A stretch of DNA of 64,000 nucleotides from Macrostomum lignano (GCA_002269645.1 NIVC01001102.1:248001-312000), one strand, 5' to 3'. Shown: positions 4,293 through 57,060, counted from the first letter of the stretch. Notes: generated from the letters alone by a model not told the origin. Numbers and translations are program-made.

Positions 4293-4427
4293 CAAATCCT
4301 ATAAAGTTAGTTTTACCTAATAAGCCCACAATGATTAACTAATAACAGTTGTATATTGCATTGTATACTTGAACTAACATCCCCCAACCATAAAATCCCA
4401 CTGTAATCCACCCCAATAGCAGTGGTA

Positions 4428-6181
4428 ATGTTAAAATTACTCAATTTCTCTGACTATCTTCGCGGCTGGATCGGAGCAATTGGTTTAATCTCCGTTATTA
4501 ACGGAGCCCAGGCTGTCTGGAATCCAGACTTATTGGCAAGAAATGTGTACACTGGGAATCCGCAGTCCGTTACACGTCTGGCATCCAGACAGTTTGCCTT
4601 GTGGACAATGTTCTGCGGATTAGTGCGACTGGTGTTCTGTGCTAATCCCGACGATTCCTGCATTCGCCTGTTAACTGTTACAACTTTTCTAATGACTTTG
4701 CTACATTTTCTCGGCGAGATATACGTTTGGGGCACCAGTGTGTGGACTTTTGGAGTCATATCGCCTTGCTGTATTGCAGGTATGTATTGGTACTTATTGG
4801 TGATTATTTGCGTTTGCGTCTTTAGAATCGTTTTAGAGTCTTTAAACTTTGGGTTCTACAATCGGGACTTTGGGTTCTTCAATCGGGACTTTGGGTTCTT
4901 CAATCGGGACTTTGAGCTCTTTAATCGGGACTTTGGATTCTTCAATTGGGACTTTGGATTCTTCAATCGGGACTTTGGGTTCTTCAATCGGGACTTTGAG
5001 CTCTTTAATCGGGACTTTGGATTCTTCAATTGGGACTTTGGATTCTTCAATCGGGACTTTGGGTTCTTCAATCGGGACTTTGGGTTCATCAATCGGGACT
5101 TTGGGCTATTCAATCGGGACTTTGAATTCTTCAATCGGGACTTTGGGCTCTTCAATCGCGACTTCTGATTCTTCAATTGGGACTTTGGGTTCTTAAATCG
5201 GAACTTTGGGTTCATCAATCGGGACTTTGGGTTTATCAATCGGGACTTTGAGCTGTTTAATCGGGACTTTGGATTCTTCAATTGGGACTTTGGGTTCTTC
5301 AATCAAGACTTTGGGTTCATCAATCGGGACTTTGGATTCTTCAATCGGGACTTTGGGTTCATCAATCGGGACTTTGGATTCTTCAATCGGGACTTTGGGT
5401 TCATCAATCGGGACTTTGGGTTCTTCAATCGGGCCTTGGCTTTTTCTTGTGCAAAACATGTGCGTGAAACCTTCCTTCCAATTCGCAGGCATCTCTCTCT
5501 TGCTATTCGCCTTTGAATCCCTGACTAAGGGCTCTCGCGGATCAGCAGACGACAGCCTCAACGATGGCGAAGGCGGCAGTCGAAAGATGCGCCTGGAGAG
5601 AATGATGATGCAGTCTGGGGCTGCTCCAAATCGGGGTGAGTCGCCCCTAAACCGGTTAAGAATCGCCCCTAAACCAGCCTAAGAATCGCCCCTAAACAAG
5701 TTAAGAATCGCCCCTAAACCAGCTTAAGAATCGCCCCTAAACCAGCCTAAGAATCGCCCCTAAACCAGCTTAAGAATCGCCCCTAAACCAGCTAAAGAAT
5801 CGCCCCTAAACCAGCTTAAGAATCGCCCCTAAACCAGCTTAGGAATCGCCCCTAAATCAGCTAAGAATCGCCCCTAGCTCGTAAACCAGCTAAAGAATCG
5901 CCCCTAAACCAGCTTAAGAATCGCCCCTAAACCAGCTTAAGAATCGCCCCTAAACCAGCTAAAGAATCGCCCCTAAACCAGCTAAAGAATCGCCCCTAAA
6001 CCAGCTAAAGAATCGCCCCTAAACCAGCTTAAGAATCGCCCCTAAACCAGCTAAAGAATCGCCCCTAAACCAGCTAAAGAATCGCCCTAAACCAACCTAA
6101 GAATCGCCCCTAAACCAGCTAAAGAATCGCCCCTAAACCAGCCCCTAATTTTACTCTTCAGACAGTCGCAAGAATCTGTGA
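4428..6181 (+). CDS. ERG28: Ergosterol biosynthesis 28 homolog; exons 4428-4779, 5489-5635, 6162-6181 (about 172 aa)
   Basis: LRGWI...VYTGNPQSVTRLASRQFALWT...HFLGEIYVWGT...GVISP matches the Erg28 family. Phase-1 donors (g|gtatgt, g|gtgagt) and acceptors (ttcgcag, ctcttcag) are consistent. The third exon is the least certain. Confidence 0.9.
4845..5435. repeat. 21-bp minisatellite (TTCAATCGGGACTTTGGGTTC) filling ERG28 intron 1
   Basis: Visible tandem units between the donor at 4780 and the acceptor at 5488. Confidence 0.95.
5640..6145. repeat. 22-23-bp minisatellite (AAGAATCGCCCCTAAACCAGCTT) filling ERG28 intron 2
   Basis: Visible tandem units starting a few bases after the GTGAGT donor. Confidence 0.95.
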
Positions 6182-13665: not shown

Positions 13666-15922
13666 TTACAAGATAATGCAGTAATTTTGGAAACGTTTGT
13701 CACTCACGAAAAAATGGAATAATGAGACGATAATTTTTCTTCGATTTTCAAAACCTCCGTTGCCTTCAGAACTACCAATAAACTTAGCGAGAAAGTTTAC
13801 GAGCGCCCTTATTTCTGTCTGTAGCGACCGCACTGCGCAGATCCGATCATGGCAGACGTCGATGCCAAGCGAGTCGCAGCGTTGCAGCAACTTCATCACC
13901 GCTGCTTTGCCTTCTTTCACGGACAGCGTCGAGTCTCCTTCCGGACACAGAACGCCGCCGAACTCTTCATCGCAAATCTGTTCACAAGACTCTCCTATCG
14001 GCATTCCGACTTTGTAGTGAGCCATCATGGTCAGACAGTTCTTCACTACCTCATGACAGCCCTCGAGCTCGCTGATTTTGTGCAGCACCCGTGCGAAGTC
14101 TTCAGGTGCCACAGGCTGACACTGACTCGGTGTAGCCTCTCTGTGCATCAGGGATTGAATCTCCCACACGATACCGAAGATCTCTTTACACTTGAAGTTC
14201 ATCTCGCCCTTGCTAAATTGCATCACGTCAGCAAAGTATATCAGAGGCTGAAGAGCAATGTGAAGATGAACAACTCTGACGCTGTTTTTGGTCAGACCGG
14301 CTTCAAAGACCTGAGCGATCTTCTGAATGTCATCGATCGCGGTTTTGGTCTCAGTAACGATTGACCTTTTGTCTGCGTGGTCCTTCTTCAGGTACACGAC
14401 GGCATCGCGCAAGAAGAAGTGTCTCATGCACACAGCTTCGAGTCTTCGGTCTGCGGCAGCAGCTTGAGTTGGATCGCTCACCTCTTCGTTATCAAAGCTC
14501 TCCATCATAGCTACCAGCATCTCCAGCGACTGCTTCAACAGTGACAACAAGTTTTCTGGTCTCCAGTCTTCGACGGGCGTCTCGTCAAGCATGTAGAACA
14601 GCAGGTTCTTGGCCATGTACGTCTTCAGACCGCTCACTTTAGAGCTGATGTGTCTCTTGATGAAGAACTTGAGCAGCACAAACAACTGTCCTTGGACTGT
14701 GGTGAGGTTGTGCATGACGATTCTCTCCAACAGAGTAGTGCTCACCCTCATCCGACTGCCCTCGAGTCCGGGAGGCGACGCAGATACGGCATGACACCGC
14801 GGCACTTGGAGAACCTCGGTTCGGATGGCTTCCAAAGTCTGTGTCGAAATGTGGGACCTGTAGCCGGGCGACAGCAGCTCGATGCGCGGATAGCTGCAGC
14901 AGTGCCGAGCAGAGATGGCTTCAATTTCCGGCAGTCGAAAAGTTGCTCCGTTGAAAGAAAGGCAGGGCGATGGTTCTGAAAAGTTCACACAATTAGTGTG
15001 GTTTTGTTTGTAGGCCATATAGCAGCATACTAGACCACTGGCCTAAGCGCTCGGCTGTGGTTTGTGAACCGCTCTGTTTTTGTTGTCATTCTCATGCAGT
15101 CGGATGCTTCGTAATTTCATAGGACATTTAATGTGTGTCGCATTATTGGTGACTTAGTTATTTCTTAGTTCACCTTCACTTGTCTCTGTTTACTATGTTT
15201 TATCTGCCTCTCTGTCTAGTTCAATCTTGTTATTCTTCTCTCTCTGCCTTGCTAAGTTGCTTCATTCTGATTGGCTCCTCAATCTCGCCTCTTTCCTTAG
15301 ACACGCACTCCACCCCTGCTTTTATTATCTGGACGCCCCACTTACTACTTCCGTCTGTTTAATATAACTCTAATTTAGAAACGTCTATCTTGCTATTTTC
15401 TTTACAGTTGGTAAATAAAAACCAGTCTTTTAAGCCCATTTGTCCCCTTTTCAGGAATTCCCTGACTCTTACATACTAAACTGCCGAACCTATTTATCAA
15501 GCCGATCAAGCTAAGGGTTTCAAAACTCGGATCGTTGAAAGTTCCGGCTAACCTTTTGATGCATAACACACGTGCCCGTCCTCGTAGTCAGCCACCTTGC
15601 AGCCTTTCAAACAATTGCTCGTCTCCGAGGCACTGCAGTCAGCTGGAATGTGAACCGAGTTCGACTTCAGCACGAATGTGATGTCAATATCCGAGTCTGA
15701 GTCGATGCTGCCGTCAATTGTGCTCAAGCAGCTGCCCCAGCCGTCGCAGAAGCTGCCGAACACGAAGAAGGTATCTTGGGACTTGAGCAGCAACCTCAGC
15801 AAGTCTTCAAGAGCCAAGGCTACTCCGCTCTGAGCTGCTGCATTTGAGGACTTGAAGCCCGCAGTCCTCATGGCAGCTGACAGGGCTCGGCTCTGGTCAG
15901 TGAATCGCTCTTCATCGGTCAT
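13666..15922 (-). CDS. Mab-21/cGAS-like nucleotidyltransferase, copy 1; exons 15922-15553 and 14975-13666 (about 559 aa)
   Basis: Exon 1 has FVFGSF..SDSDIDITF (GS and D-x-D). Exon 2 has EAISARHCCSYP, MRVSTTLLE, LLKFFIK, LKTYMAKNLLFY..E...DW and MRHFF, the Mab-21 helical-lobe pattern. Phase-1 splice aaag|gttag to ttttcag|aa. An extra 3' exon is possible. Confidence 0.85.
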
Positions 15923-18237: not shown

Positions 18238-19230
18238 TTAAAGAGTAGTGTACACGGCGACGGGGAGAGTCAGGCGAGCGCTAGAGAGGTGCCGACAGCA
18301 CACGCTTGACCATTGGGCGCAGGAGACGGAGGCAACCCCCCCCCCCCCCGACTGCGGCAGGTAACGTGAAACGGCGCCGCTGCGCCAGCCGCCCAGCCGC
18401 TTGATCTGCTCCACGTCGAGGCCGCTGTCGAACGCCAGACAGACGCCACCCCGTCGTAGAGAGTGGCCTGAGAAAGCTGTCACCGCCCAACCCGCATCTG
18501 TCAGAGCCCGAGCGAGGCGGCGGTTGAATTGACGCGATGTCATCGGGCACCAGCTTCCGGCCATGTGGACGCAAAACAGCCGAGTGAGCGCCGGCGCAGA
18601 CAGCAGCTTGTTAGTCTGAAAATGCCGCCGCAGGGCTTGGACAGGACAAAGTGGGTGGCTTCCGAGCGCTGGCAGCACCGCCTCCTGGTAGTCTTGTCTG
18701 CATTGGTTGGTCTTCGACTGTCGAACTCGGAGTCTCCAGCACTGACTATCGGCCTGAGTGTCGCCGACGAGAATGAAGTGGCGCCCGCAGACACTTGCTT
18801 TCCTGAGAAGCGCCCAGAAGCAGCAGAGCACGGCGGCCCAAAAGGCGGCGTCTGCAGGGTCTCTTGGGTTCACCTGATTTGCCAGTGAAAACAGAACCGC
18901 CGGGGTGATGGGGTCTTTCTGCTTGACTGAATGGCCGCTTGTCCGTTTGGCGCTCTTAACTGCCAGATCGACCAGGCCGGACTTGGTGATGTCGGGGAGT
19001 TGCGCCAGCTTGAAGCTCCAGCTGATGGCCGCCAAGTGTCCACCGAGGCTACCGGGTGCCACGCCGCGCTTAGCCAGGCGTCGCACATACTCGACCAGGT
19101 GCACCGGGGACGCCGCTAGTGGCTGAACACCTTCGAGGTTGCAGAAGCGCTGCCACTGTTCGAGGTTTGAAGCGTACGATGCCCTCGTACTAGGAGCCCA
19201 GGCGTCGGCGAGAAAGCGAAGGAGAGGCCC
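18238..19230 (-). CDS. Tyrosine recombinase of the Ngaro element
   Basis: WAPSTRASY..WQRFC, LLRKAS, SKT, LCPV, FSGHSLRRGG and GGWRS..VSRY: catalytic R-K-HxxR-W-Y all present. The frame is open to about 19320 and overlaps the RNaseH end; start codon unclear. Confidence 0.92.
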   Translation of the reverse strand, partial: GPLLRFLADAWAPSTRASYASNLEQWQRFCNLEGVQPLAASPVHLVEYVRRLAKRGVAPGSLGGHLAAISWSFKLAQLPDITKSGLVDLAVKSAKRTSGHSVKQKDPITPAVLFSLANQVNPRDPADAAFWAAVLCCFWALLRKASVCGRHFILVGDTQADSQCWRLRVRQSKTNQCRQDYQEAVLPALGSHPLCPVQALRRHFQTNKLLSAPALTRLFCVHMAGSWCPMTSRQFNRRLARALTDAGWAVTAFSGHSLRRGGVCLAFDSGLDVEQIKRLGGWRSGAVSRYLPQSGGGGVASVSCAQWSSVCCRHLSSARLTLPVAVYTTL

Positions 19231-19329: not shown

Positions 19330-20905
19330 AAATTATGCAGGCTACGGTAGAAGCGGGGAAAAAAATTCTAGAAGCAAGGCGAGAGGCCGGATCCGCCAGG
19401 ACCTGGAAGGCGCCTGGAACGTGAAAGGCCCGCAGCCGAAGACCCCACGCGTCGCAGGCAAGCGACAGCGTGTGCAGGAGCCGGTTGACGTCGTTACATG
19501 GCGAGCTGAGCTTGTTCAGCGCACCTACAGCCGCCGAGCTGTCGCTGTACACGACGATGTCCGCACCGGTGAAACGGCCCGGGGCCGCGAGGATGCTGAG
19601 GACAGGCGTGATGGTCTCCTTTACGTTAATGTGGGCCGAAGCAAAAAGGCCACCAGCGTCATTCTTCCAGTTGATGTAGAGCCAGTCGGACTTATTGGCC
19701 AGTCATTCTTCCAGTTGATGTAGAGCCAGTCGGACCCGAGTTGCAGGCGTCCGTCTCGATGACGATCCTTCGAGCGTAGCGAGGCCAGATGGGCGCGCAG
19801 CCAACGGACTGAAGGCTTTTCCTCTACCAGTGCAGCGACTCGGTGAGGTGCGGGGTCAGCCGCAATTTGTCACCAGGTCTAGTCGCCCGGCTCACCAGCA
19901 TCAGTAGAGGGCGGATGGAAGCTCGGCCTTTCCTGGTCACGCTGCTCACCCAGGACAGCTTGCCGCAGATCCGCTGAAGGTCGCGCTTGCTGATGGCACC
20001 GCGTCGATGCAAGCAGCTCCCAAATGCGTCTTTGAGTGCACTGAGCTTGGCCGGTGGGATGCTCAACATCCCCGACTCTGTGTCAATCAGGACGCCCAGG
20101 AAAACTGTGCGCCGCGACGGCCCGCTAGACTTCTTTTCGTTGATGGTGAAACCGAGGCTCGTCGCCAGGCTCCTCAAGCTCTCGTAAGCCTCGACACAGG
20201 CCTCGTAGGTGCTCGCCGCCACAGCGAAGTCGTCGAGGTAGCCAACGCAGGTGAACCCGCACCGTTGCATCATGCGCACCACCGCCTTAGACAGCCTGTT
20301 GAAATGGTACACCGAGGCCGCAGCGCCGAAGCTCAGCCGGGTGTCGACCAGGTAGGTAGGCTCGCTGTCGCCGCTAAATTGCCATTTGATGCCCAGAGCG
20401 TCGAGAGAAGAAGGATAAACACCCACTGAGCGATACGCCTCCTTGAGATCGATCTTGGCCGTGAAGTCACCGGGCTTGAGTTGTGAGCAGAGGCCGCTAA
20501 CCGTCTCAAACTTAATCTTGTGGTCTGCGATAAAGTGGTCGTTGACCGCATAGCCTTCCGGACGACTGCAGTCGTGGATGATACGGACTCCACCGTCCTC
20601 TTTCGGGATGGCACCAAGCGCGGAGATCTTGCACGGACGTCGGCTGATTGACACATACCGCCCGCTGGCGATCTCACGCTGCAATTGCTCTTCAACCAAC
20701 GTCTTGTACTCAATGGCGGACGAGTAGTTCTCAACTTCGGAAAGTTTAAAATCTGTTTCAGTAGTGAGCGCGAAGCCGTTTTGGACTCCGTCAATTAAAA
20801 AAGGCCCGTCGGGGTCGCCGTCCAGCTCCTTCGCCCAGGCATTTGCGTCAAGGGAGCCACTCGGATTGAAATTGATGTCGCGAATGGAGTTAAAAACTTG
20901 GGATT
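19330..20905 (-). pseudogene. Ngaro pol (RT + RNaseH), disrupted
   Basis: W..ELDGDPDGPFLIDG, RIIHDCSRP, KIDLKEAY, RLSFG, YLDD, FLGVLID; RNaseH TDAC, HINVKE, YSDSSAAV, HVPG..LADPASR. TAG at 19824 and a 34-bp duplication (19658-19691 / 19702-19735) break it. Confidence 0.9.
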
Positions 20906-27538: not shown

Positions 27539-29748
27539 TTACTGGGACTGTAGTGCTTCCTCCTCTTCGTCATCTGACCAGTCTCTGAGGGCTGGACAAT
27601 CTTCGGTACCGACAACTTCGCAAAATATCATGAGGATATTCCGCGCGAAATTCACTTCACTAGAACGCCAGCCATCGCCCTCAGTTCTAAACACCTGAAG
27701 TTAAAATAAATAATTAAATAATTAAATTCCTAAACCTCCTGACGGATTAAATAAAGCTGGTTTAGAAGAACTGATTACCGGAAAAGGAAAATTTGTAGCG
27801 AGTAGAGCTGCTGATGCGAAATCTAGCACATGTAGAGCAGTGTCGGTGGGTAAACTACTTCTTCTGCAGTTTTTCAGAAATGTGGACAACACCTGAAACA
27901 GTTGCCAAATTTCTGTCTGCAGCGACCGCACTGCGCAGATCCGATCATGGCAGACCTCGATGCCGAGCGAGTCGCAGCGTTGCAGCAACTTCATCACCGC
28001 TGCTTTGCCTTCTTTCACGGACAGCGTCGAGTCTCCTTCCGGACACAGAACGCCGCCGAACTCTTCATCGCAAATCTGGTCACGTGACTCTCCTATCGGC
28101 ATTCCGACTTTGTAGTGAGCCATCATGGTCAGACACTTCTTCACTACCTCATGACAGCCCTCGAGCTCGCTGATTTTTTGGAGCACCCGTGCAAAGTCTT
28201 CAGGTGCCACAGGCTGACACTGACTCGGTGTAGCCTCTCTGTGCATCAGGGATTGAATCTCCCACACGATACCGAAGATCTCTTTACACTTGAAGTTCAT
28301 CTCGCCCTTGCTAAATTGCATCACGTCAGCAAAGTATATCAGAGGCTGAAGAGCAATGTGAAGATGAACAACTCTGACGCTGTTTTTGGTCAGACCGGCT
28401 TCAAAGACCTGAGCGATCTTCTGAATGTCATCGATCGCGGTTTTGGTCTCAGTAACGATTGACCTTTTGTCTGCGTGGTCCTTCTTCAGGTACACGACGG
28501 CATCGCGCAAGAAGAAGTGTCTCATGCACACGGCTTCGAGTCTTCGGTCTGCGGCAGCAGCTTGAGTTGGATCGCTCACCTCTTCGTTATCAAAGCTCTC
28601 CATCATAGCTACCAGCAACTCCAGCGACTGCTTCAACAGTGACAACAAGTTTTCTGGTCTCCAGTCTTCGACGGGCGTCTCGTCAAGCATGTAGAACAGC
28701 AGGTTCTTGGCCATGTACGTCTTCAGACCGCTCACTTTAGAGCTGATGTGTCTCTTGATGAAGAACTTGAGCAGCACAAACAACTGTCCTTGGACTGTGG
28801 TGAGGTTGTGCATGACGATTCTCTCCAACAGAGTAGTGCTCACCCTCATCCGACTGCCCTCTAGTCCGGGAGGCGACGCAGATACGGCATGACACCGCGG
28901 CACTTGGAGAACCTCGGTTCGGATGGCTTCCAAAGTCTGTGTCGAAATGTGGGACCTGTAGCCGGGCGACAGCAGCTCGATGCGGGGATAGCTGCAGCAG
29001 TGCCGAGCAGGAATAATGTCGATATCCGACAAGCGTAGGTCATCGCCCCCGAGAGGTAAGCTTGGCGTACTTTCTAAAATACGAGATTCACAGCGTACTA
29101 AATTGTAACTAGAAGCGGCTAGAAGCGTCGTAAAATTCCATCTACGAGCGTAATTCCCTTTCTTGGTGTCCCAGGAGACGCATGTCATGTGTTAAAATGC
29201 TGTAACTCAGTTTGACACATGACCTCTAACTGGGGACGCCGCTTTCCAATAGGTCAGGGTGCAGGTGAGGGCTCCCATGGATAGGCGCACAGCACCACAT
29301 TCTAAACACTCCCTCATCATCACTAAACCGTTTGTGTCATTGCAGGAAAGAATTATAATGATCGTTTCTTGGACCCACCTTTAGACTGATAAGACACGTG
29401 CCCGTCCTCGTAGTCAGCCACCATGCAGCCCTCCAAGCACTGACTCGTCTCCGAGGCACTGCAATCAGCTGTAATGTGAACCGAGTTCGACTTCAGCACG
29501 AATGTGATGTCAATATCCGAGTCTGAGTCGATGCTGCCGTCAATTTTGCTTAAGCAGCTGCCCCAGCCGTCGCAGAAGCTGCCGAACACGAATAAGGAAT
29601 CGTAGGACTTGAGCAGCAACCTCAGCAAGTCTTCAAGAGCCAAGGCTACTCCGCTCTGAGCTGCTGCATTTGAGGACTTGAAGCCCGCAGTCCTCATGGC
29701 AGCTGACAGGGCTCGGCTCTGGTCAGCAAATCGCTCTTCTCCTTCCAT
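27539..29748 (-). CDS. Mab-21/cGAS-like nucleotidyltransferase, copy 2; exons 29748-29379, 29073-27779, 27694-27539 (about 606 aa)
   Basis: Same GS/DID motif and Mab-21 lobe; third carboxylate region SDIDIIPA. Exon 1 is 370 nt, identical in length to copy 1. The terminal exon (ccg|gtaatc to ttcag|gtg, ending DWSDDEEEEALQSQ*) is less certain. Confidence 0.85.
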
Positions 29749-46560: not shown

Positions 46561-49500
46561 ATGACAAGTCGTTTCAAGATTGCAAAACGTCTGGAAGCTT
46601 TTTCCAAAGTTGAAAATATCTGGTTTGTACTTGATGTTCTGATTAATTTTTAGTAATGTTAACTTTAATTAGAGTTGACAAGATAAATAACTAAAATTTG
46701 ATAACGGATACTTTCAGGGTGATGTACTCTGCTCTTGCTGTGAAACACAATGCTCTCAATTTGGGACAGGTGAGTTATGTAGCATTAAATAATCATGTCA
46801 AACACGAATCTGTAGCATGATTTTGGTCTTTAGTGGCTTTCTAATTCTAAAATAAGTCGAATTAATTTTTGAACAATGCTAACTAAAGTTTAAAAATCAT
46901 GCAAAAAACAGTTTTTTATCTCTCCAATTCGGTGTATCTCTACTAAAAGTAGTACAACTGTTCCTTCAGGGCTTCCCAGACTATGCGCCACCAAAGTCTG
47001 CAACCGATGCACTTGCTTCAGTGGCCAATTCCTCTAACCCGATGTTGCACCAGTACACCAGGGGATACGTGAGTAGATTATTCAACATCAAGCCTTAACA
47101 CAGACTCGCTTGAGATGCCTATGAAGAACTTTCCACCGTTTTAGGGTCATCCCAGACTGGTAAATGCTCTTGCCAAGCTGTACACCACAGAGCTGCAGAA
47201 TCCAATTGATCCGATGAAGAATATTCTAATCTCCAACGGTGCCTACATGTGTCTTTATTCCGCTATCCACTCTCTAGTTGATGAAGGCGACGAAGTAGTC
47301 ATCATTGAGCCGTTTTTCGACTGCTACGAGCCAATGGTCCGTTCTGCCGGTGGGCAGCCGGTCTTTGTTCCGCTGCGACCATCCGCTGATGACAGGTCGA
47401 CCACTCAGAACCAACGCCATCGTTCTGCGCAGGACTGGCGCTGGGATGCCGAGCAGCTCCGGGCCGCCTTCACGCCTCGAACCAAAATGTTGATAATGAA
47501 CACGCCAAATAATCCAATTGGCAAAGTGTTCGACTCTGACGAATTGAAATTGCTTGCCGAGCTGTGCTGCAAGCACGATGTTTTGTGTCTTAGCGACGAA
47601 GTGTACGAATGGCTGGTAAGATTGATCGGTTAGTTAGGAGTTGTTGCGGTTTAATGCGTACGTATTAGTACATGTAGCTACGTGTTTGCATAGGTTGATG
47701 ATTATCTGGCAAATCAGTGTTAGTCAAGTCAGTCATTTCGTAGGGGGGGGGGGGCTCTGGGTGCTGCTGCATATCAAAGCGACAGCCGACCTGCAGCCAC
47801 GAGTATTCAAGCACTCGTGTCCATTCCTTCGACCTTTGAGCCCTTACACGCACACGGTTACGTACTAAATCATACGCTCACACCGAGTGCACATCGGCCC
47901 TGACTTTCTCGTCTATAGGCGCTTTATTAGATACACTCTCTGCATCATTGGGGGTCATCAGTTTGTAAGGCCAACTTTTGTCCACCAGACCCAGCTTACC
48001 CTGCACCGAGCACAAAATCTAACCCGGATGCGGGAGTCAGACGCGTTACCTCTGAGCTGCTCAACCGCTCTTTCTGCATCCTTGTCTATAGTAGATCTCA
48101 ACACGGAAGTGAATATTTAGGCAGGTTACAATGCAAATAGCCATGAATAAATCAGCTCGAAGCTCCTTTTGTAGTGATCACGAATTTAACGGCCGTTGCT
48201 ATTTATGTTGTAGCCTAGTGGCTAGGGCGTCGGACTCACGACTTGAAGGTCGGGGGTTCGATTCCCGATCCCACTGTAACAATTTGTGTCCTTGAGCAAG
48301 ACACTTAACTCTCTCTCTCTGTATTGCTTCAGTTCACCCAGCTGTAAAATTGGTGCCAGCATTAGCTGGGATAATTGAGGGTGCGCGTGTGGCGATCCTC
48401 CAGGCCGTGGACTGAACAGCCGTACGCAGCCTTCAGATGCGCCGCGCAATAGCTGCGGCTGAGCTGTCGGTTGCACAACTGCCCATTGGGGCAGGTGAAA
48501 TCAATAATAATAATTATTATTATTAATGTACAATTGCATGTAGCTCTAACACCTATTAAATATAGTATACGGGCTATACATAAACCTTGCTTTATAAAAT
48601 CTAATCGTCGTTTAATACCTGAAGCTGAGTCGTATAAGAGTTCTAGAACAAAAAATGGCAGAAAAATGAAACAAATATTACGAGCATACTATTAGTTTAA
48701 TTTTTGTAATAGTGACTACGAAATGAATAATACAATCTGGGATGCGAGTATTTATATTTTCTCAAAATCTAAATGTAAACCGATTTTCGACCCTCTAATT
48801 GGTCTAGGTGTACCCGGGCCATCGGCATCAGCGCATAGCAACTCTGCCGGGCATGTGGGAGCGCACCATCACCGTTGGCAGCGCTGGTAAAACGTTCAGC
48901 GCAACTGGCTGGAAGCTCGGATGGTCAATTGGACCGGAAGAGCTGATCAAGCATCTGCAGGTGGTGCACAGGAACTGCTGTTACACTTGTCCAACTCCGT
49001 CGCAGGTGAGAAATAAGACAACTCTATTGGAGGTTAACAGTGAATCTTTGTCCAGTTGACTCTTTGTCCACTTGACTCTTTGTCCACTTGACTCTGTCCA
49101 CTTGACTCTTTGTCCACTTGACTCTTTGTCCACTTGACTCTTTGTCCACTTGACTCTTTGTCCACTTGACTCTTTGTCCACTTGACTCTTTGTCCACTTG
49201 ACTCTTTGTCCACTTGACTCTTTGTCCACTTGACTCTTTGTCCACTTGACTCTTTGTCCACTTGACTCTTTGTCCACTTGACTCTTTGTCCACTTGACTC
49301 TTTGTCCACTTGACTCTTTGTCCACTTGACTCTTTGTCCACTTGACTCTTTGTCCACTTGACTCTTTGTCCACTTGACTCTTTGTCCACTTGACTCTTTG
49401 TCCACTTGACTCTTTGTCCACTTGACTCTTTGTCCACTTGACTCTTTGTCCACTTGACTCTTTGTCCACTTGACTCTTTGTCCACTTGACTCTTTGTCCA

Positions 49501-50088
49501 CTTGACTCTTTGTCCACTTGACTCTTTGTCCACTTGACTCTTTGTTCACTTGACTCTCACTGTCTCATATGATTATTTGTCCTCTTCACTTTATCTGTTT
49601 GAATCTTTGTCCACTTAAATATATTTCCTAGCGGTCGTTTACTTAATGTCATAATGTCAAACGAACAATTTCAGGACCATTTGTGAATGTGATTCATTGG
49701 GGAATCGCTCACATGTTGCAGGACTCAAAACGAATTCGAAGACTTGTAGATATTTTCTCATATGCCAAGTGCTCGCGTACTACATCACTAAATCTACGCC
49801 ACTTTGAATTTTAACTACTACAAGTAATCCAACCTAAATCTCTCAGGAAGCAGTTGGCATTGCACTGGAGGCGGAGCTGGAGAGGCGCGGCACTCCTGAA
49901 TGCTATTTCAACGCCCTGCCAACCGAGCTGCTGTCGAAACGGGACCGACTGGCTGAGCTGGTTGAATCAGCGGGGCTTCCGGTCTACTTGCCCGCTGGCG
50001 GATACTTTATGGTGGGCCCTTTTTTAAGTGTCTTTTTCTGTTATTCTGCATTAGCCTTTCATTTGGTCCTAGTGTGTCTGTCTGTCTG

Positions 50089-50138
<50 letters not shown>

Positions 50139-50140
50139 CA

Positions 50141-50205
<65 letters not shown>

Positions 50206-50352
50206 GTTTCTGTCTGTCTGTCTGCTTGTCTGTCTTTCTGTCTGTCTTAGTATCTGTCTGTCTGTGTGTGTCTGCCTGTCTGTCTGTGTCTGCCTGTCTG
50301 TCTGTCTGTCTGTCTGTCTGTCTGCTTGTCTATCTGTCTGTCTGTCTTAGTA

Positions 50353-50423
<71 letters not shown>

Positions 50424-50520
50424 GCCTGTCTGTGTTTCTGTCTGTCTGTCTGTGTTTCTGTCTGTCTGTCTGCTTGTCTGTCTGTCTGTCTGTCTTAGTA
50501 TCTGTCTGTCTGTCTTAGTA

Positions 50521-50575
<55 letters not shown>

Positions 50576-51024
50576 GCTTGTCTATCTGTCTGTCTGTCTG
50601 TCTGCCTGTCTGTGTTTCTGTCTGTCTGTCTGCTTGTCTGTCTGTCTGTCTGTCTTAGTATCTGTCTGTCTGTCTGTGTCTGCCTGTCTGTCTGTCAGTC
50701 TGTCTGTCTGTCTGTCTGTCTGTGTCTGTCTCTCATCTCACCAGCAACTCGCCGCCTCAGATCGTGGACATCTCTAGCCTGCCGGAGCCGCCGCCGGCCA
50801 CCGGCAGCCCAGACGATCCTCTTGGTGAGCTTCGGGACGCCCGACTGGTCCGCTGGCTGACCCGGGAGCGCCAGCTGGCCACAATCCCCTGCTCCTGCTT
50901 CTACGGCCAAGCCGACAGGCATCTGGGCGAGAATTTCATTCGCCTGTGCTTCATCAAAGAGGACGAAACGATTGAGCAGTTTGGCAGAGGTCTGCTCAAT
51001 TGGTTGAAGCCGGGGTCGTGCTAG
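46561..51024 (+). CDS. KYAT: Kynurenine aminotransferase I/III-like (paralog B); exons 46561-46622, 46718-46769, 46970-47068, 47145-47615, 48808-49005, 49847-50011, 50761-51024
   Basis: [70 protein letters not shown] and FIRLCFIK; all phases consistent. Confidence 0.93.
47850..48065 (-). mobile_element. SINE family A, intronic
   Basis: Head gcagctcagaggtaacgcgtctgactc plus a partial core. Confidence 0.7.
48207..48520 (+). mobile_element. Full-length CORE-type tRNA-derived SINE (family B)
   Basis: A box (tagcctagtgg), B box (ggttcgattcc), then TGTGTCCTTGAGCAAGACACTTAAC..CTTCAGTTCACCCAGCTGTAAAATTGG resembling the MIR CORE, and an (AAT)/(ATT) tail. Confidence 0.85.
49050..49557. repeat. 16-bp minisatellite (TTGACTCTTTGTCCAC), about 31 near-perfect units, in KAT-B intron
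   Basis: Visible. Confidence 0.97.
50070..50730. repeat. (TCTG)n microsatellite filling the last KAT-B intron
   Basis: Visible. Confidence 0.97.
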
Positions 51025-51835: not shown

Positions 51836-53386
51836 CTAAACAGCAGCTAAGCAAAAGCGTATTTTGTTTAGTCTCTTGTGTCGCATCTCGCGCTTGAATA
51901 ATTCAGCCATCCAGTTCATGAATGACTCCTTCCGACAGCAGCCAGCCAGTGTTCTGCACGTTTGCGGGTTCGCGCCACTGATCTCGAGTTCCAGTTGGCC
52001 GACTTCAGTGAACCGGAAGTTGGTGCGCAAGTTTGCTAGGCTCTCTTCTATTCCGGTATCCGAGTCCGATACTTGTCGAGGTTCTTCCTCGTCCAACAAA
52101 AAACTGGAGACATTGTCCGCGTGTAGTTTGAGCACCTCCTCGATGCGGCACTTCTCCTCGTCGGTGAGCTCGCTGCTGCCGTCAGTTGATACCGAATAGA
52201 GCAGCTTGACGACTCTTCGCACGCTTGGTATCTGCGGGCAAACTCTGTCACCAGGCAAGCCGGTGTCTGTTGGAGTCGGCTCTTCGGCATCGGCCTCAGC
52301 CTCCGTGTCGATGAGCTGCGGCAGATCTGCACCATCAGGTGTTGACTCGCTGCTGCCTTGCAGAGCTGGTCTCGGACTCTCGATGGCAAGTTTAGACTCG
52401 ATCAGGTTAGCATCGTGCCTCTGGTCTGGGCTCCAACTGAGCAGATTCTCAACCAGCCTCCATAGATTATCTGTCAACGGGAATACTGACTTACTGCGAT
52501 CGAGGACCACCTTCCAGTCTTCGTTGCTAGTTGGCCTCGACAGCGTCATGGCTCCGAAAGCCTCTGGTAGGTCTAATTCCAAGTCCGGAGTGCTTGGAAT
52601 TTCCAAACGTTGAAAGAGACGCTCTTCGTAGCTGTCGAAAGGCCTCTGTCGATAGATGGATTCGCAAATTAGTATGCCAAACGAATAACAATCAGCTTTA
52701 AAATCGTAGCGCAGCTTCTTGTCGCCGTTACGCCAGTTGCGCACTTCTGGCGCCATCCAACGCCATGTGCCGATGTCGACCGACATACCATCGGGATCGT
52801 AGTAGCGGCTCATGTCAAAGTCGCACACCTTGCATAGCCTTTTTCCTTCGAATAGGAGCACGTTGGAACTCTTAAGATCGCGGTGCACTATACCATTATT
52901 ATGCAGGTACGCCATGGCTTCGGCTACCTGGCGAAGCCAATTAATACAGTGATCCCAGGTATAGCCACCATCTCCAGTCGGGTAGGTGAACTCACTTTTG
53001 CTCTTCCTCTTGGCTGTGAGAGCAAACTGGAGGCTGCACTCGCCGAGCTCCATAAAAATGACGGGCCAACTCTCTGGATTATTCTCATCAACTTCCAGGG
53101 TGCAATCCAGCACGGTGACAATATTCTTGTGATTGCACTTTGACAACAGCTCATATTCTTTCTGGCATAGTTCTTTCATGTCCTTTTTGCTACTACTTCC
53201 GCAGTACTGCTTCATAGCAACGAAATCGCCTTTAGAAAGCAATGCGATCGTGTCGCCCTCCAATGAGAAGTCCTCCTGCAGCTCCTTTTTGTAGATTCGA
53301 TGATTGGATCGGGCCATCAGCGAGCGTCCTGTCTCGCTGTTTTCAATCGAGACGCACCGATTCAGACCTTTATTAGAACCTGCCAT
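51836..53386 (-). CDS. Intronless atypical TKL-like protein kinase 1 (DFD, no Gly loop) with C-terminal unknown domain
   Basis: VAMK, QKEY, HKNIV, FMELG, HRDLKSSNVLL, KVCDFD, GTWRWMAPE and ADCYSFG. First ATG at 53386. Confidence 0.92.
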   Translation of the reverse strand: MAGSNKGLNRCVSIENSETGRSLMARSNHRIYKKELQEDFSLEGDTIALLSKGDFVAMKQYCGSSSKKDMKELCQKEYELLSKCNHKNIVTVLDCTLEVDENNPESWPVIFMELGECSLQFALTAKRKSKSEFTYPTGDGGYTWDHCINWLRQVAEAMAYLHNNGIVHRDLKSSNVLLFEGKRLCKVCDFDMSRYYDPDGMSVDIGTWRWMAPEVRNWRNGDKKLRYDFKADCYSFGILICESIYRQRPFDSYEERLFQRLEIPSTPDLELDLPEAFGAMTLSRPTSNEDWKVVLDRSKSVFPLTDNLWRLVENLLSWSPDQRHDANLIESKLAIESPRPALQGSSESTPDGADLPQLIDTEAEADAEEPTPTDTGLPGDRVCPQIPSVRRVVKLLYSVSTDGSSELTDEEKCRIEEVLKLHADNVSSFLLDEEEPRQVSDSDTGIEESLANLRTNFRFTEVGQLELEISGANPQTCRTLAGCCRKESFMNWMAELFKREMRHKRLNKIRFCLAAV

Positions 53387-54011
53387 TCTACTCAGTTCGC
53401 TTGTTTGCACTGTTGGAATAGTTTAAAATGCTATTATCTTGCTTCACTATTTTGTGTGTTCACTATTATTGCTCTTGCGGACAACTGCATGTAGCACTTG
53501 TCTTCAAGGTCACATCGCTTTAGCTTTTATGCGATATTATGTACAGTAAACTGAGCCGTGGTAAATGGGGAGTAGGGGGGGGCAGAATTTTCACTCGCAA
53601 AAGAGAGCAAGCCACTTTGACAGTGTCATTGCGGCCGGCTTGCTGAAACACCATATTGTACGCAAAATCTGGGGTTTGGGGCTTAAGTCTCTTTAGTTTC
53701 TGTTAACAACCCCAGTGGAAACCTGTCTGCCCCTACAGACGGTATTGTGTGCACATGTGTACACTCGCTCTTTCCACAGTTAGTCAGCCTAGACTAAATC
53801 TAATAGCGTTTGTTAAAACACCGCGCGCACACACCTCAGATAGCGACTCATTTTCTGCTCAGCAGAGTACAGTGGATGAAAAGTTACAAAAAAATAAGTG
53901 GAACTTCCCTTGCAAAGCAGTTAACATAAAAGACCTTGCTTGTCTTTTTAGCTCTTAGCTATACTGAATTGTTTTTTTTCTGAATAGCTAATAACAGATT
54001 TGGTTCGAAAA
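53387..54011. promoter_or_regulatory. Probable bidirectional promoter region between the divergent kinases
   Basis: Inferred from geometry only: about 625 bp between divergent ATGs. Confidence 0.4.
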
Positions 54012-55517
54012 ATGCCAAGAGTAGACTCGCCAATAGACAGTCTGTACCACTGTCTGGATTTGGAGACCAAAAAAGAAATCGCCATCTCTCAGCAGAGCAG
54101 CAACTACGTTAGAATTCATTCAGTCAAGCTGAAAAGAAACTGGGTTAACGGATTTCTTTTACCAGAGCTGACTGAAAGAACTACTGTGGCTATGAAGGAG
54201 ATTACTAGAGGCGCGCCACAGATGAGTCCCATCGAAATCTGCAAAAGAGAATTTAATCGCCTGAGAGATTTGTCACACAATAACATCGTGATTGTGTACG
54301 AAGCCTGCCTGACTGTCGATCCCAACGACCCGTCGAGCGTTCCGTCCTACTTGATGGAGATCGGGGAGTGCAGCCTCAGCTTTGTAATGTGCAACAAACT
54401 GCAGGATTCAACGCACATCGTACCAGTGATGAGTGATGGCTTGGCTAGAGACCCTACAAATAATATTTACTACACGAAGCAGCACTTGTTCCATTGGCTG
54501 ATTCAGGTGGCCGATGCCATGCAGTACCTTCACGAGAGCGGTTTAATCCATCGTGATGTGAAAGGAGCAAACGTGTTAATGTTTGATAAGAAGACTAAAT
54601 GCAAGCTTTGCGATTTCGACACTTGCCGTGAAGTCGACCCCGAAGGCATGACGCCCAAGGTCGGAACCGATCGCTGGAGAGCACCGGAGCTGCGAAAGCC
54701 CACTGACGGCCTCAGAGCACGGTACAACAAAGCGTGCGACCGATTTTCATTCGGCGTTCTCATGTGCGAGGCGGTTTTCCGCGAATTGCCGTTCCAAGAC
54801 TATCCGGACAGCGCCTTCACCGCATGCGATGAGGACATACCAAATATCTTAGCCAACGAAGCCAATGGTGCTATGCTGATTCGCAAGTGCGTAAGCGGGC
54901 CAGTAGTGGAAATCAACAAAAGCAAATCTGTGTTCAAGGAGCTGCCAAATAGCTTTTGGCAGCAATTGGAGAACCTGCTCTCCTGGTCAGCTGATAGACG
55001 CAATCCCTTTTCCGCTGTGAAAAGTACTCTAACCAACTGTTTAGAGAGTTTAACAACTAGTGACCTGCCTATCATCTTAGTAGACAAGTCGGGACAGAGA
55101 ACTGACACAGGGACGCTTGCTGTCACAGAAGTTCCAAGTCGACACAGGAGATATGTGAGAAAACGCGTTGTCTACTCATTGAGCGTAGAGTTGGACGCGG
55201 AACATCAGGAACAATTGATTACCAGTATGCGAGAGTTTTCCGGTCAAATCAACGTGCAGGCTGGAGTACCGAACGATCAATTAAAAAACGTTCGTCACGA
55301 GTACAGCTTTGTGCAGCCTAAGGAGCTCATTCATGACATCAAGTCGCTCCAGCAACAGCTCGTCGATGAAGTGTCGGAGTATTGCTCCAATGCTGATAAA
55401 AAGTTCACTAAGTGGTTAGATGACCGTTTCGAATTCGAACCGGATATGCAAATTCGCGGCATCAAATTTTCGGCTTTGGTAGGTCAGGGCAATCTTCAGC
55501 CTGGAGCTGAAGAATAA
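54012..55517 (+). CDS. Intronless atypical TKL-like protein kinase 2 (DFD, no Gly loop) with C-terminal unknown domain
   Basis: VAMK, KREF, HNNIV, LMEIG, HRDVKGANVLM, KLCDFD, GTDRWRAPE and ACDRFSFG. First ATG at 54012. Confidence 0.92.
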   Translation: MPRVDSPIDSLYHCLDLETKKEIAISQQSSNYVRIHSVKLKRNWVNGFLLPELTERTTVAMKEITRGAPQMSPIEICKREFNRLRDLSHNNIVIVYEACLTVDPNDPSSVPSYLMEIGECSLSFVMCNKLQDSTHIVPVMSDGLARDPTNNIYYTKQHLFHWLIQVADAMQYLHESGLIHRDVKGANVLMFDKKTKCKLCDFDTCREVDPEGMTPKVGTDRWRAPELRKPTDGLRARYNKACDRFSFGVLMCEAVFRELPFQDYPDSAFTACDEDIPNILANEANGAMLIRKCVSGPVVEINKSKSVFKELPNSFWQQLENLLSWSADRRNPFSAVKSTLTNCLESLTTSDLPIILVDKSGQRTDTGTLAVTEVPSRHRRYVRKRVVYSLSVELDAEHQEQLITSMREFSGQINVQAGVPNDQLKNVRHEYSFVQPKELIHDIKSLQQQLVDEVSEYCSNADKKFTKWLDDRFEFEPDMQIRGIKFSALVGQGNLQPGAEE

Positions 55518-56049: not shown

Positions 56050-57060
56050 AGCAACGGAGCAATCAGGTGCATCGCGGGTCAATTCCGTGTTTACTTGTGG
56101 GGTCCTCTACAGCGGGTCCACCCCAACTGCCAGCCGGAAAACTGCCAGCCGACAACTGCCAGCCGGAAAACTGCCAGTCGACAACTGCCAGCCGGAAAAC
56201 TGCCAGCCGACAACTGCCAGCCGGAAAACTGCCAGTCGACAACTGCCAGCCGAAAAATGCCAGCCGACAATTGCCAGCCGAGAAAACTGCCAGCCGGAAA
56301 ACTGCCAGCCGACAACTCCCAGCCGGAAAACTGCCAGCCGACAATTGCCAGCCGACAATTGCCAGCCGACAACTGCCAGCCGACTGCCAGCTCTTTCAAA
56401 GAAAGAGCAAAGGCTACCTAAAATACGAAATTTGAATGCCTTCTCCTTCGCATATATACTTCTAAAGTTCTAATGGAAATCTGAAAAAATTAGGGAAGGG
56501 AAGGGCGACATTTAAGGCTACCCCACAAGCCTTTTGCTAGCCAAACAGTTTCGTGCTTTTTACTTAGCTAATAAGTAGGCTACAGTAGATTCAATTAGCT
56601 AGAACTTGTCGGCTGGCAGTTGTCGGCTGGCAATTGTCGACTGGCAGTTGTCGGCTGGCAGTTTTCCGGCTGGCAGTTTTCCGGCTGGCAGTTTTCTCGG
56701 CTGGCAATTGTCGGCTGGCATTTTTCGGCTGGCAGTTGTCGACTGGCAGTTGTCGGCTGGTAGTTGTCGGCTGGCAATTGTCGGCTGGCAGTTTTCCGGC
56801 TGGCAGTTGTCGGCTGGCAGTTTTCCGGCTAGCAGTTGGGGTGCTCCCCTCTACAGAAATGGTGGTGCAGCCGTTGCTTATGCAGAATAAGTCACGATCG
56901 GTTTGCTTTCCCCCCGACCTAAGCGTAGCGTCAACTCCGCTGAAGACGCCGCCGAATCTGCCGTTGCCGTGGTGTAGCCGTCTCCAGCTCTGCCGCGGGC
57001 CCAGTTATCGGTCAGACTGCCACCTCGCTCGCTGTCGCGGCAGTTTCGCCTCTGCTGACT
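56050..57060 (-). pseudogene. Decayed copy of the last exon of the ALK/LTK-like glycine-rich gene
   Basis: RRNCRDSERGGSLTDNWARGRAGDG aligns to RRNSSDGERGGGLANGWAGGRAGDG; SNGCTTIS and TSKHG align to GSGCTAIA and ASEHG. Frameshifted and interrupted by a foldback element. Confidence 0.75.
56113..56847. mobile_element. Foldback/MITE-like element: long TIRs built of 14-15-bp subrepeats, 9-bp TSD CCTCTACAG
   Basis: The left arm 56113-56400 is the inverted complement of the right arm 56600-56847; CCTCTACAG occurs at 56104-56112 and 56848-56856. Confidence 0.88.

Follow-up and report, generated by a model that had tools for sequence, protein, structure and literature searches.

Introduction

Few elements of protein kinases are as conserved as the glycine-rich loop (GxGxxG). 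The WNG kinases of Toxoplasma were presented as the first active kinases without this loop, and in them its loss goes together with replacement of the DFG glycine (position DFG+2) by an acidic residue, which gives the motif DFE (PMC6442604). In WNG1, which is active, mutation of this residue (E457) to Gly or Ala severely reduced activity; Glu457 was proposed to serve as an extra Mg2+ ligand holding the ATP phosphates, and part of the activity comes from basic residues close to the site of the lost loop (PMC6442604). Here we describe a head-to-head pair of kinase genes, K1 and K2, in a stretch of 64,000 nucleotides from the flatworm Macrostomum lignano (GCA_002269645.1, NIVC01001102.1:248001-312000; hereafter the window, with positions counted from its first letter). 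Both genes lack the glycine-rich loop and encode DFD instead of DFG, and both belong to a family with two further M. lignano paralogues, K3 and K4.

DFD is also found in the pseudokinase domain of RNase L, where both carboxylates coordinate Mg2+ and ATP is bound with an affinity of ~1 uM (PMC6442604), and in MNK1 and MNK2 (MKNK1/2, CAMK group) (PMC3326643). RNase L carries ankyrin repeats and a KEN ribonuclease domain, neither of which is present in K1 or K2, and has no phosphotransferase activity. MNKs have a normal glycine loop, a CAMK-type sequence and MNK-specific inserts, whereas K1 and K2 match tyrosine kinase-like (TKL) kinases. Both peculiarities occur together, with the VAIK, HRD and DFG Asp motifs kept as in K1-K4, in Toxoplasma WNG1/ROP35 and BPK1. 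A described family with an acidic DFG+2 and loop loss thus exists by analogy, but the WNGs are not close homologues. They are secreted parasite proteins in a clade distinct from canonical kinases, their N-lobe strands are reordered, and a helical extension replaces beta1 and the glycine loop. In contrast, the flatworm kinases show no signal peptide on inspection (the N-terminus MAGSNKGLNR... is not hydrophobic), the structural model of K1 has no confident helix in residues 1-25 that would correspond to the WNG helical lid, and the family is TAK1-like with an additional C-terminal domain. No WNG or ROPK protein was identified among the matches examined for K1, K2 and the family. The likeness of K1-K4 to the WNGs is probably convergent.

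A kinase core without a glycine-rich loop

Both products matched the Pfam Pkinase profile (PF00069) above the gathering score (E = 2.6e-37 for K1 and 1.5e-30 for K2). K1 contains VAMK (residues 56-59), the alpha-C Glu (E77), HRDLKSSN (168-175) and APE (212-214, in the context GTWRWMAPE); the corresponding motifs in K2 are VAMK (59-62), HRDVKGAN (180-187) and APE (224-226, in the context GTDRWRAPE). An earlier reading of this DNA, made from the sequence alone (hereafter the sequence-only reading), had listed these motifs, including the pattern GTxRWxAPE, together with CDFD in both proteins and SNHRIY (K1) or SNYVRIH (K2) where the glycine-rich loop is expected. Each of them was found where that reading had placed it. 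K1, K2, K3, and every copy of them share the residues K59, E77, D170, N175, D189, and E214 (K1 numbering) without exception. Also retained are K172 of the Ser/Thr-type catalytic loop, the alpha-F Asp, and the alpha-H/I Arg. In the activation segment, S202 and T207 of K1 are kept as Ser or Thr in K1-K3.

Upstream of the VAIK Lys, GxGxx[GAS] was absent in all four paralogues. The family-conserved element at the loop position is instead [S/Q]-N-x(1-5)-R, and S27, N28, and R30 of K1 are invariant in K1, K2, and K3. A degenerate G-x-S-x-x-A (GRSLMA, residues 20-25) precedes SNHRIY in K1 and is not found in K2, K3, or K4. A missed upstream exon carrying the glycine loop was considered and rejected: the N-terminal 30 residues are conserved in K1, K2, and K4 (L..C[LV], SN..R), and in-frame stops lie immediately upstream of the ATGs of both K1 and K2.

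Modeling of K1 by AlphaFold2 (AF2) with an alignment of 82 sequences yielded a canonical kinase core, with a predicted local distance difference test score (pLDDT) above 90 from beta3 to alpha-I. The first confident strand comprised residues 29-35 (beta2) and was followed by a 20-residue insert ahead of beta3. When this kinase model was submitted to Foldseek, the top 50 matches were all kinase domains (best E = 3.6e-15), and kinases of the tyrosine kinase (TK) and TKL groups were returned. With an alignment of four sequences, the kinase domain reached a mean pLDDT of 39, and the C-terminal domain alone was folded.

The C-terminal ~125 aa are common to K1-K4. Both AF2 runs arranged this domain of K1 as beta-alpha-beta-beta-alpha-beta, i.e. 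as a ferredoxin-like fold (pLDDT ~60-86). Foldseek returned weak ferredoxin-like matches, such as the aIF2-alpha C-terminal domain, PII-like proteins, and dimeric alpha/beta-barrel/ferredoxin-like proteins; with a best E of 4e-3 and template modeling (TM) scores of 0.14-0.66, they do not justify a name more specific than 'ferredoxin-like'. Neither Pfam, applied to the isolated C-terminal domains, nor a four-paralogue profile searched against PDB sequences gave a match. Judged by its predicted fold class, the domain could have a regulatory or oligomerisation role.

A family of four paralogues

In an exhaustive HMMER scan of 1.84 billion representative proteins, a K1/K2 profile matched over 360,000 kinases. 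In the best 150 of these matches (at least 115 bits), family members came from M. lignano only. Word-indexed protein searches, started from K1, K2, and a K1/K2/K3 alignment, gave only near-identical M. lignano copies and generic kinases and did not connect K1 with K2, K3, or K4; the paralogues were obtained from the HMMER scan and a motif screen of its matches. As no relative was found outside M. lignano in these searches, the family is so far known from this species only. Oomycete and slime-mould sequences and the eukprot 'm51a1' set ranked high, and horizontal transfer was considered as an origin. It was rejected as unsupported; the protist matches reflect generic TKL C-lobe similarity, with at most 38% identity over at most 40% of the query.

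In GenBank and UniProt, K1-K4 are uncharacterised 'hypothetical protein' entries. The literature searched contained no description of the family, no kinome analysis for Macrostomum, and no publication match for the gene identifiers searched; the M. lignano papers and supplements, which were incomplete in part, gave no match to Mlig005192, Mlig021319, Mlig020798, Mlig019192, or Mlig003732. The family is undescribed, in line with the sequence-only reading.

K3 (PAA57555.1, 531 aa) contains VVIK, HRDLKSYN, CDFE, and APE, carries RSSNQCNTRLY instead of the glycine loop, and has the same C-terminal tail as K1 and K2. K4 (9752-11086 of L004, M. lignano NIVC01000977.1) contains CKVCDLDLSR, a glycine-free 'VQNIR', and the family C-terminal tail. 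Its annotation covers no more than a 257-aa fragment, and its reading frame has one in-frame TGA at conceptual codon 44 (~L004 9881), just before the VAIK-equivalent strand. K4 may be a pseudogene, or its stop may be an assembly error. The codons at DFG+2 are GAC, GAC, GAG, and GAT for K1 to K4, encoding D, D, E, and D. Mutual identity among the four is only ~27-33%, and all combine an acidic DFG+2 with the absence of GxGxxG; the proposal of the sequence-only reading that the oddities of K1 and K2 are conserved thus extends to the whole family. No second kinase gene was present within 10 kb on either side of K3 or K4, and both are solitary. A Dicer-like gene is located ~8 kb downstream of K4.

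In a neighbour-joining (NJ) tree (267 columns, 200 bootstraps, TAK1-like and other TKL kinases as outgroups), K1-K4 were monophyletic (93.5%), K1, K2, and K3 grouped together (95.5%), and K1 and K2 were sisters (88%). Since all four paralogues carry both changes and form one clade, the loss of the loop and the Gly-to-acid change predate the radiation of the family and have persisted since then. On this tree, the split between K1 and K2 is the youngest in the family, yet it is old, with the two at 31% identity.

The acidic residue is rare among related kinases. In the 82-kinase alignment (the family and 77 retrieved relatives), the DFG+2 column held G in 76 sequences; D or E was confined to the five sequences of the family and a single metagenomic protein unrelated to it. 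A motif screen of 406 retrieved proteins yielded 536 catalytic-loop/DFx matches, including 487 with DFG and 18 with DF[DE] or DLD, half of which (9 of 18) were copies of K1-K4; this protein set is skewed to relatives of the queries, and the actual frequency in the background is probably lower.

One unrelated protein (P0297, 549 aa, from a JGI metagenome contig) contains two TKL kinase domains, both with DFD (KIADFDE and KITDFDE) and both with a degenerate glycine loop (KGTSGNV and RGASSFV). This protein is an independent case in which loop degeneration and DFD occur together, and it hints at the same coupling.

Affinity to TAK1

A profile of K1, K2, and K3 searched against the PDB matched TAK1/MAP3K7 best (E = 4e-27, next match 1e-21). 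The match includes the C-lobe patterns YYT..H...W..Q....YLH, IHRDLK..N.L, K.CDF, and WxAPE. In the HMMER alignment, 'M[ST]' and 'GT' of the family stand opposite the activation-loop 'MT' and 'GS' of TAK1, i.e. its phosphorylation sites Thr187 and Ser192. Outside the family, the best matches in the protein library include a slime-mould kinase, kinases of oomycetes, and 'MAP3K7-like' multi-kinase proteins of dipterans. K1-K4 would accordingly be TKL-group kinases descended from a TAK1/MAP3K7-like ancestor, with moderate support for TAK1 as the closest relative.

Several differences separate the family from TAK1. TAK1 has a canonical GxGxxG and DFG, and K1-K4 have neither; compared with TAK1, they carry inserts after beta2, in the alpha-D/alpha-E region, and before alpha-H. 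The tail of TAK1 binds TAB2/3, whereas K1-K4 carry the unrelated ferredoxin-like domain at the C-terminus. The four lineage-specific paralogues and the identity of ~30% argue against orthology to TAK1. Membership in the MNKs was considered, given the common DFD, and rejected: the best 60 PDB matches of K1 comprised STE20 kinases (OSR1, SPAK, SLK), TKL kinases (ZAK, TAK1, RAF, LIMK1), and EGFR, with no MNK or CAMK-group kinase among them. The sequence-only reading had likewise placed K1 and K2 near the TKLs and away from the MNKs, a view borne out by the family profile.

Gene pair, genomic copies and selection

The coordinates of both genes and their elements are given in Table 1. The head-to-head, intronless arrangement with divergent ATGs, which had been put at about 625 bp apart in the sequence-only reading, was confirmed. 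For K1, K2, and K3, the GenBank gene span equals the length of the coding sequence; the average M. lignano gene has 4.9 introns (PMC5730564). The product of K1 is 97-99% identical to PAA93287.1 and PAA69822.1, and that of K2 is 98-99% identical to PAA93288.1 and PAA69821.1, all from M. lignano. K1 and K2 themselves align over 521 columns with 31% identity (E = 1e-68) and resemble each other into the C-terminal tail. GenBank gene models of M. lignano were derived from an RNA-seq-guided transcriptome (PMC5730564); the K1-K2 loci are therefore transcribed.

Table 1. Coordinates (window positions) of the K1-K2 gene pair and its elements
Feature	Position	Strand	Remarks
K1 coding sequence	51836..53386	-	516 aa + stop from first ATG, single exon
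K1 protein kinase domain, ~residues 26-336	52379..53311	-	AF2 core pLDDT >90, residues 1-25 unmodelled
K1 SNHRIY, residues 27-32	53291..53308	-	glycine-free, at the position of the glycine-rich loop / start of beta2
K1 CDFD, residues 188-191	52814..52825	-	D189 metal-binding Asp; D191 (codon GAC) replaces the DFG glycine
K1 activation-segment GMSVDIGT, residues 200-207	52766..52789	-	S202 and T207 lie opposite 'MT' and 'GS' of the TAK1 activation loop
K1 C-terminal family-specific domain, ~residues 389-516	51839..52222	-	fold predicted by AF2, no Pfam/PDB match
K1-K2 spacer, 625 bp between divergent ATGs	53387..54011	.	GC 0.42
K2 coding sequence	54012..55517	+	501 aa + stop, single exon
K2 SNYVRIH, residues 30-36	54099..54119	+	glycine-free replacement of the glycine-rich loop
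K2 CDFD, residues 200-203	54609..54620	+	D203 (codon GAC) replaces the DFG glycine
K2 C-terminal family-specific domain, ~residues 379-501	55146..55514	+	homologous to the domain of K1, K3, and K4

The pair occurs in three genomic copies: on the 357,583-bp contig of the window, on NIVC01000031.1, and on NIVC01001286.1. The copies are ~98% identical (98.1-98.7% in the spacer) and agree in orientation, spacer, and neighbours, with two class I/II aminotransferase genes downstream of K1 in each. The assembly of the DV1 line is redundant, with 180 Mb in blocks that are at least 95% identical (PMC5730564). Because of this redundancy and the recent origin of the copies, they do not provide independent evidence for a conserved arrangement. 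As K1 and K2 are sister paralogues, their head-to-head position is most simply read as an old local inverted tandem duplication, and the pairing itself is probably an ordinary tandem duplication.

All six K1 and K2 open reading frames (ORFs) in the three copies are intact. Pairwise dN/dS (omega) among the copies was 0.41-0.54 in comparisons of K1 and 0.14-0.17 in those of K2. All 26 residues that vary lie outside the motifs. Both ORFs are under purifying selection. The ratio of nonsynonymous to synonymous changes did not differ significantly between K1 (14:7) and K2 (8:15; Fisher p = 0.069).

The spacer is a candidate bidirectional promoter, and shared regulation of K1 and K2 through it is possible. 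It contained only short inverted repeats at chance level, and an Rfam scan of the region from 49 to 58 kb gave no match. Downstream of K2, neither AATAAA nor ATTAAA was present within 700 bp. Two arrays of the 14-nt satellite CAACTGCCAGCCGA (~18 and ~16 copies) occupy window positions 56124-56384 and 56606-56838 in inverted orientation, ~220 bp apart; the first begins ~600 bp downstream of the K2 stop codon. On the other side, a 16-nt satellite (49041-49557, 32 copies, 98% matches) and a (TGTC)n microsatellite (50075-50731, ~166 copies) lie between exons, or beside the 3' exon, of the aminotransferase (PF00155) gene downstream of K1, and produce long spurious 'CLSV' ORFs. The motifs of K1 (HRDLKSSN...DFD) recur near residue 1830 of a 2380-aa M. 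lignano entry, UniRef100_A0A1I8HTI7, which, given its length, is probably a chimeric gene model fusing K1 with unrelated neighbouring sequence.

Other features of the window

Two further ORFs of 450 and 488 aa (13669-15018 and 27725-29188, both on the minus strand) are 93% identical over 400 aa and showed sub-threshold matches to the Pfam domain Mab-21_C (cGAS/MAB21-type; E = 3e-4 to 6e-4); a PDB sequence search with them gave no match. They are probably large exons of tandemly duplicated Mab21-domain genes ~14 kb apart. A Phage_integrase match (tyrosine-recombinase-like, 18241-19104, minus strand, E = 8e-5) adjoins an ORF with an RVT_1 reverse transcriptase domain (19827-20699, minus strand, E = 2e-14), and the two may be parts of a DIRS-like retroelement; the stretch around them is rich in GC (0.57-0.62). 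An ORF at 4422-5165 on the plus strand has a clear Erg28 domain (E = 3e-22).

Discussion

Taken as a whole, the model to which we give about even credence is that K1 and K2 are TAK1-like sister paralogues which function as Ser/Thr kinases with an altered nucleotide clamp and are catalytically competent or, at the least, able to bind Mg-ATP. In the ancestor of the family, before its radiation, the glycine-rich loop would have been lost and replaced by a glycine-free [S/Q]-N...R segment of variable length; in the same ancestor, the DFG glycine would have been exchanged for an acidic residue, and the C-terminal ferredoxin-like domain of ~125 aa would have been acquired. The DFG+2 carboxylate could then act as an additional Mg2+ ligand and hold the ATP phosphates in place of the loop, possibly with the Ser, Asn, and Arg side chains near beta2 as a phosphate cap. 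Phosphorylation of the activation loop may serve as the activity switch, and the C-terminal domain may contribute regulation or oligomerisation. By analogy with WNG1, we infer that K1 and K2 can transfer phosphate or at least bind Mg-ATP.

Several points weigh against this model. Loss of the glycine loop is also common among pseudokinases, and the competence of K1-K4 is read from sequence and model. Residues 1-25 of K1 are unmodelled, and a beta1-loop-beta2 hairpin may still exist there. The affinity to TAK1 rests on C-lobe similarity; with K1 alone as the query, OSR1, ZAK, and TAK1 were nearly tied in the PDB search. The tree is a quick NJ analysis of 267 columns, one of the four members has an in-frame stop, and the omega of K1 (~0.4-0.5) reflects moderate constraint only. 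Finally, DFD in MNK1/2 favours the inactive DFD-out state and not catalysis (PMC3326643).

A somewhat unlikely alternative is that the family consists of nucleotide-binding pseudokinases or scaffolds, in which the two DFD carboxylates bind Mg-ATP tightly without phosphotransfer, as in RNase L, and nucleotide binding together with the C-terminal domain serves dimerisation or allostery. The absence of a glycine loop from every member, the high-affinity ATP binding without kinase activity that accompanies DFD in RNase L (PMC6442604), and the remodelled N-lobe (a 20-aa beta2-beta3 insert and an unmodelled N-terminus) would all fit. On the other hand, the VAIK Lys, HRD Asp, N175, DFG Asp, and K172 are invariant across paralogues of ~30% identity, the Ser/Thr positions of the activation loop are conserved, and WNG1 demonstrates that the same combination of features can be active (PMC6442604). 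The conserved Ser/Thr residues would also suit an MNK-like autoinhibition, in which DFD-out places the Phe in the ATP pocket and the kinase stays inactive pending phosphorylation of its activation loop by an upstream kinase, the acidic residue acting as a brake; such a state is documented in MNK1/2 and is relaxed by D228G in MNK2 (PMC3326643). This we regard as quite unlikely: MNKs keep the glycine loop and belong to the CAMK group, with no homology to K1-K4 beyond the kinase fold, the Glu of K3 and the DLD of K4 indicate that the acid is conserved and not its Phe context, and WNG offers the closer parallel for an acidic residue combined with a missing loop. That the genes are functionless relics, i.e. 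lineage-specific duplicated (retro)genes drifting to pseudogenes whose odd motifs reflect decay, seems exceedingly improbable. The stop and fragmentary annotation of K4, the omega of up to 0.54 for K1, and the failure to find orthologues elsewhere in the best 150 of the >360,000 HMMER matches speak for it, but the six K1/K2 ORFs are intact with omega below 1 (~0.15 for K2), catalytic residues have stayed invariant despite the divergence of the paralogues, and the gene models are transcript-supported. Decay is accordingly unlikely for K1 and K2 and plausible for K4.

The remaining alternative concerns the pair itself. The sequence-only reading had proposed that K1 and K2 form a co-regulated heterodimer or a sensor/executor couple, by analogy with head-to-head immune gene pairs. 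Pairs of immune receptor genes (e.g. plant NLRs) consist of divergent genes with a short common upstream region, as do K1 and K2; the divergent layout and the 625-bp spacer recur in each of the three genomic copies, the two genes are still neighbours although they have diverged to 31% identity, the common ferredoxin-like domain could mediate dimerisation, and two Mab-21-like ORFs are located 23-38 kb away. Paired immune receptors, however, usually join different clades with divided sensor and helper roles, whereas K1 and K2 are sister paralogues of identical architecture without any immune domain. The three copies are recent duplicates, K3 and K4 are solitary, and no record of co-expression or interaction was found in the literature searched. 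An obligate pair is thus unsupported and, in our judgement, improbable; the sister relationship of K1 and K2 is instead the signature of a local inverted duplication.

A bolder form of the preferred model, in which K1-K4 are TAK1-derived kinases with remodelled nucleotide binding, can also be formulated. Here, the family would represent a fully active TAK1-derived MAP3K without a glycine loop, whose ATP clamp was rebuilt independently of WNG from the DF[D/E] carboxylate and the S-N...R cap, and would speak for a general rule of kinase evolution by which loop loss demands an acidic DFG+2; in its strongest version, K1 and K2 would in addition form an obligate heterodimer through the C-terminal domain and be driven by one bidirectional promoter. 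We consider this form rather doubtful.

The loop-less design with an acidic DFG+2 is already known from WNG; its version on a TAK1-like scaffold in K1-K4 is new. If the preferred model is true, an unrelated animal TKL family with both changes would point to a compensatory coupling, in which a carboxylate acting via Mg2+ stands in for the loop. Kept across four paralogues at ~30% identity, this coupling would make the family a second, independent test system, and it would refine the calling of pseudokinases from sequence. For the flatworm kinome, K1-K4 add a lineage-specific expansion of TAK1-like kinases.

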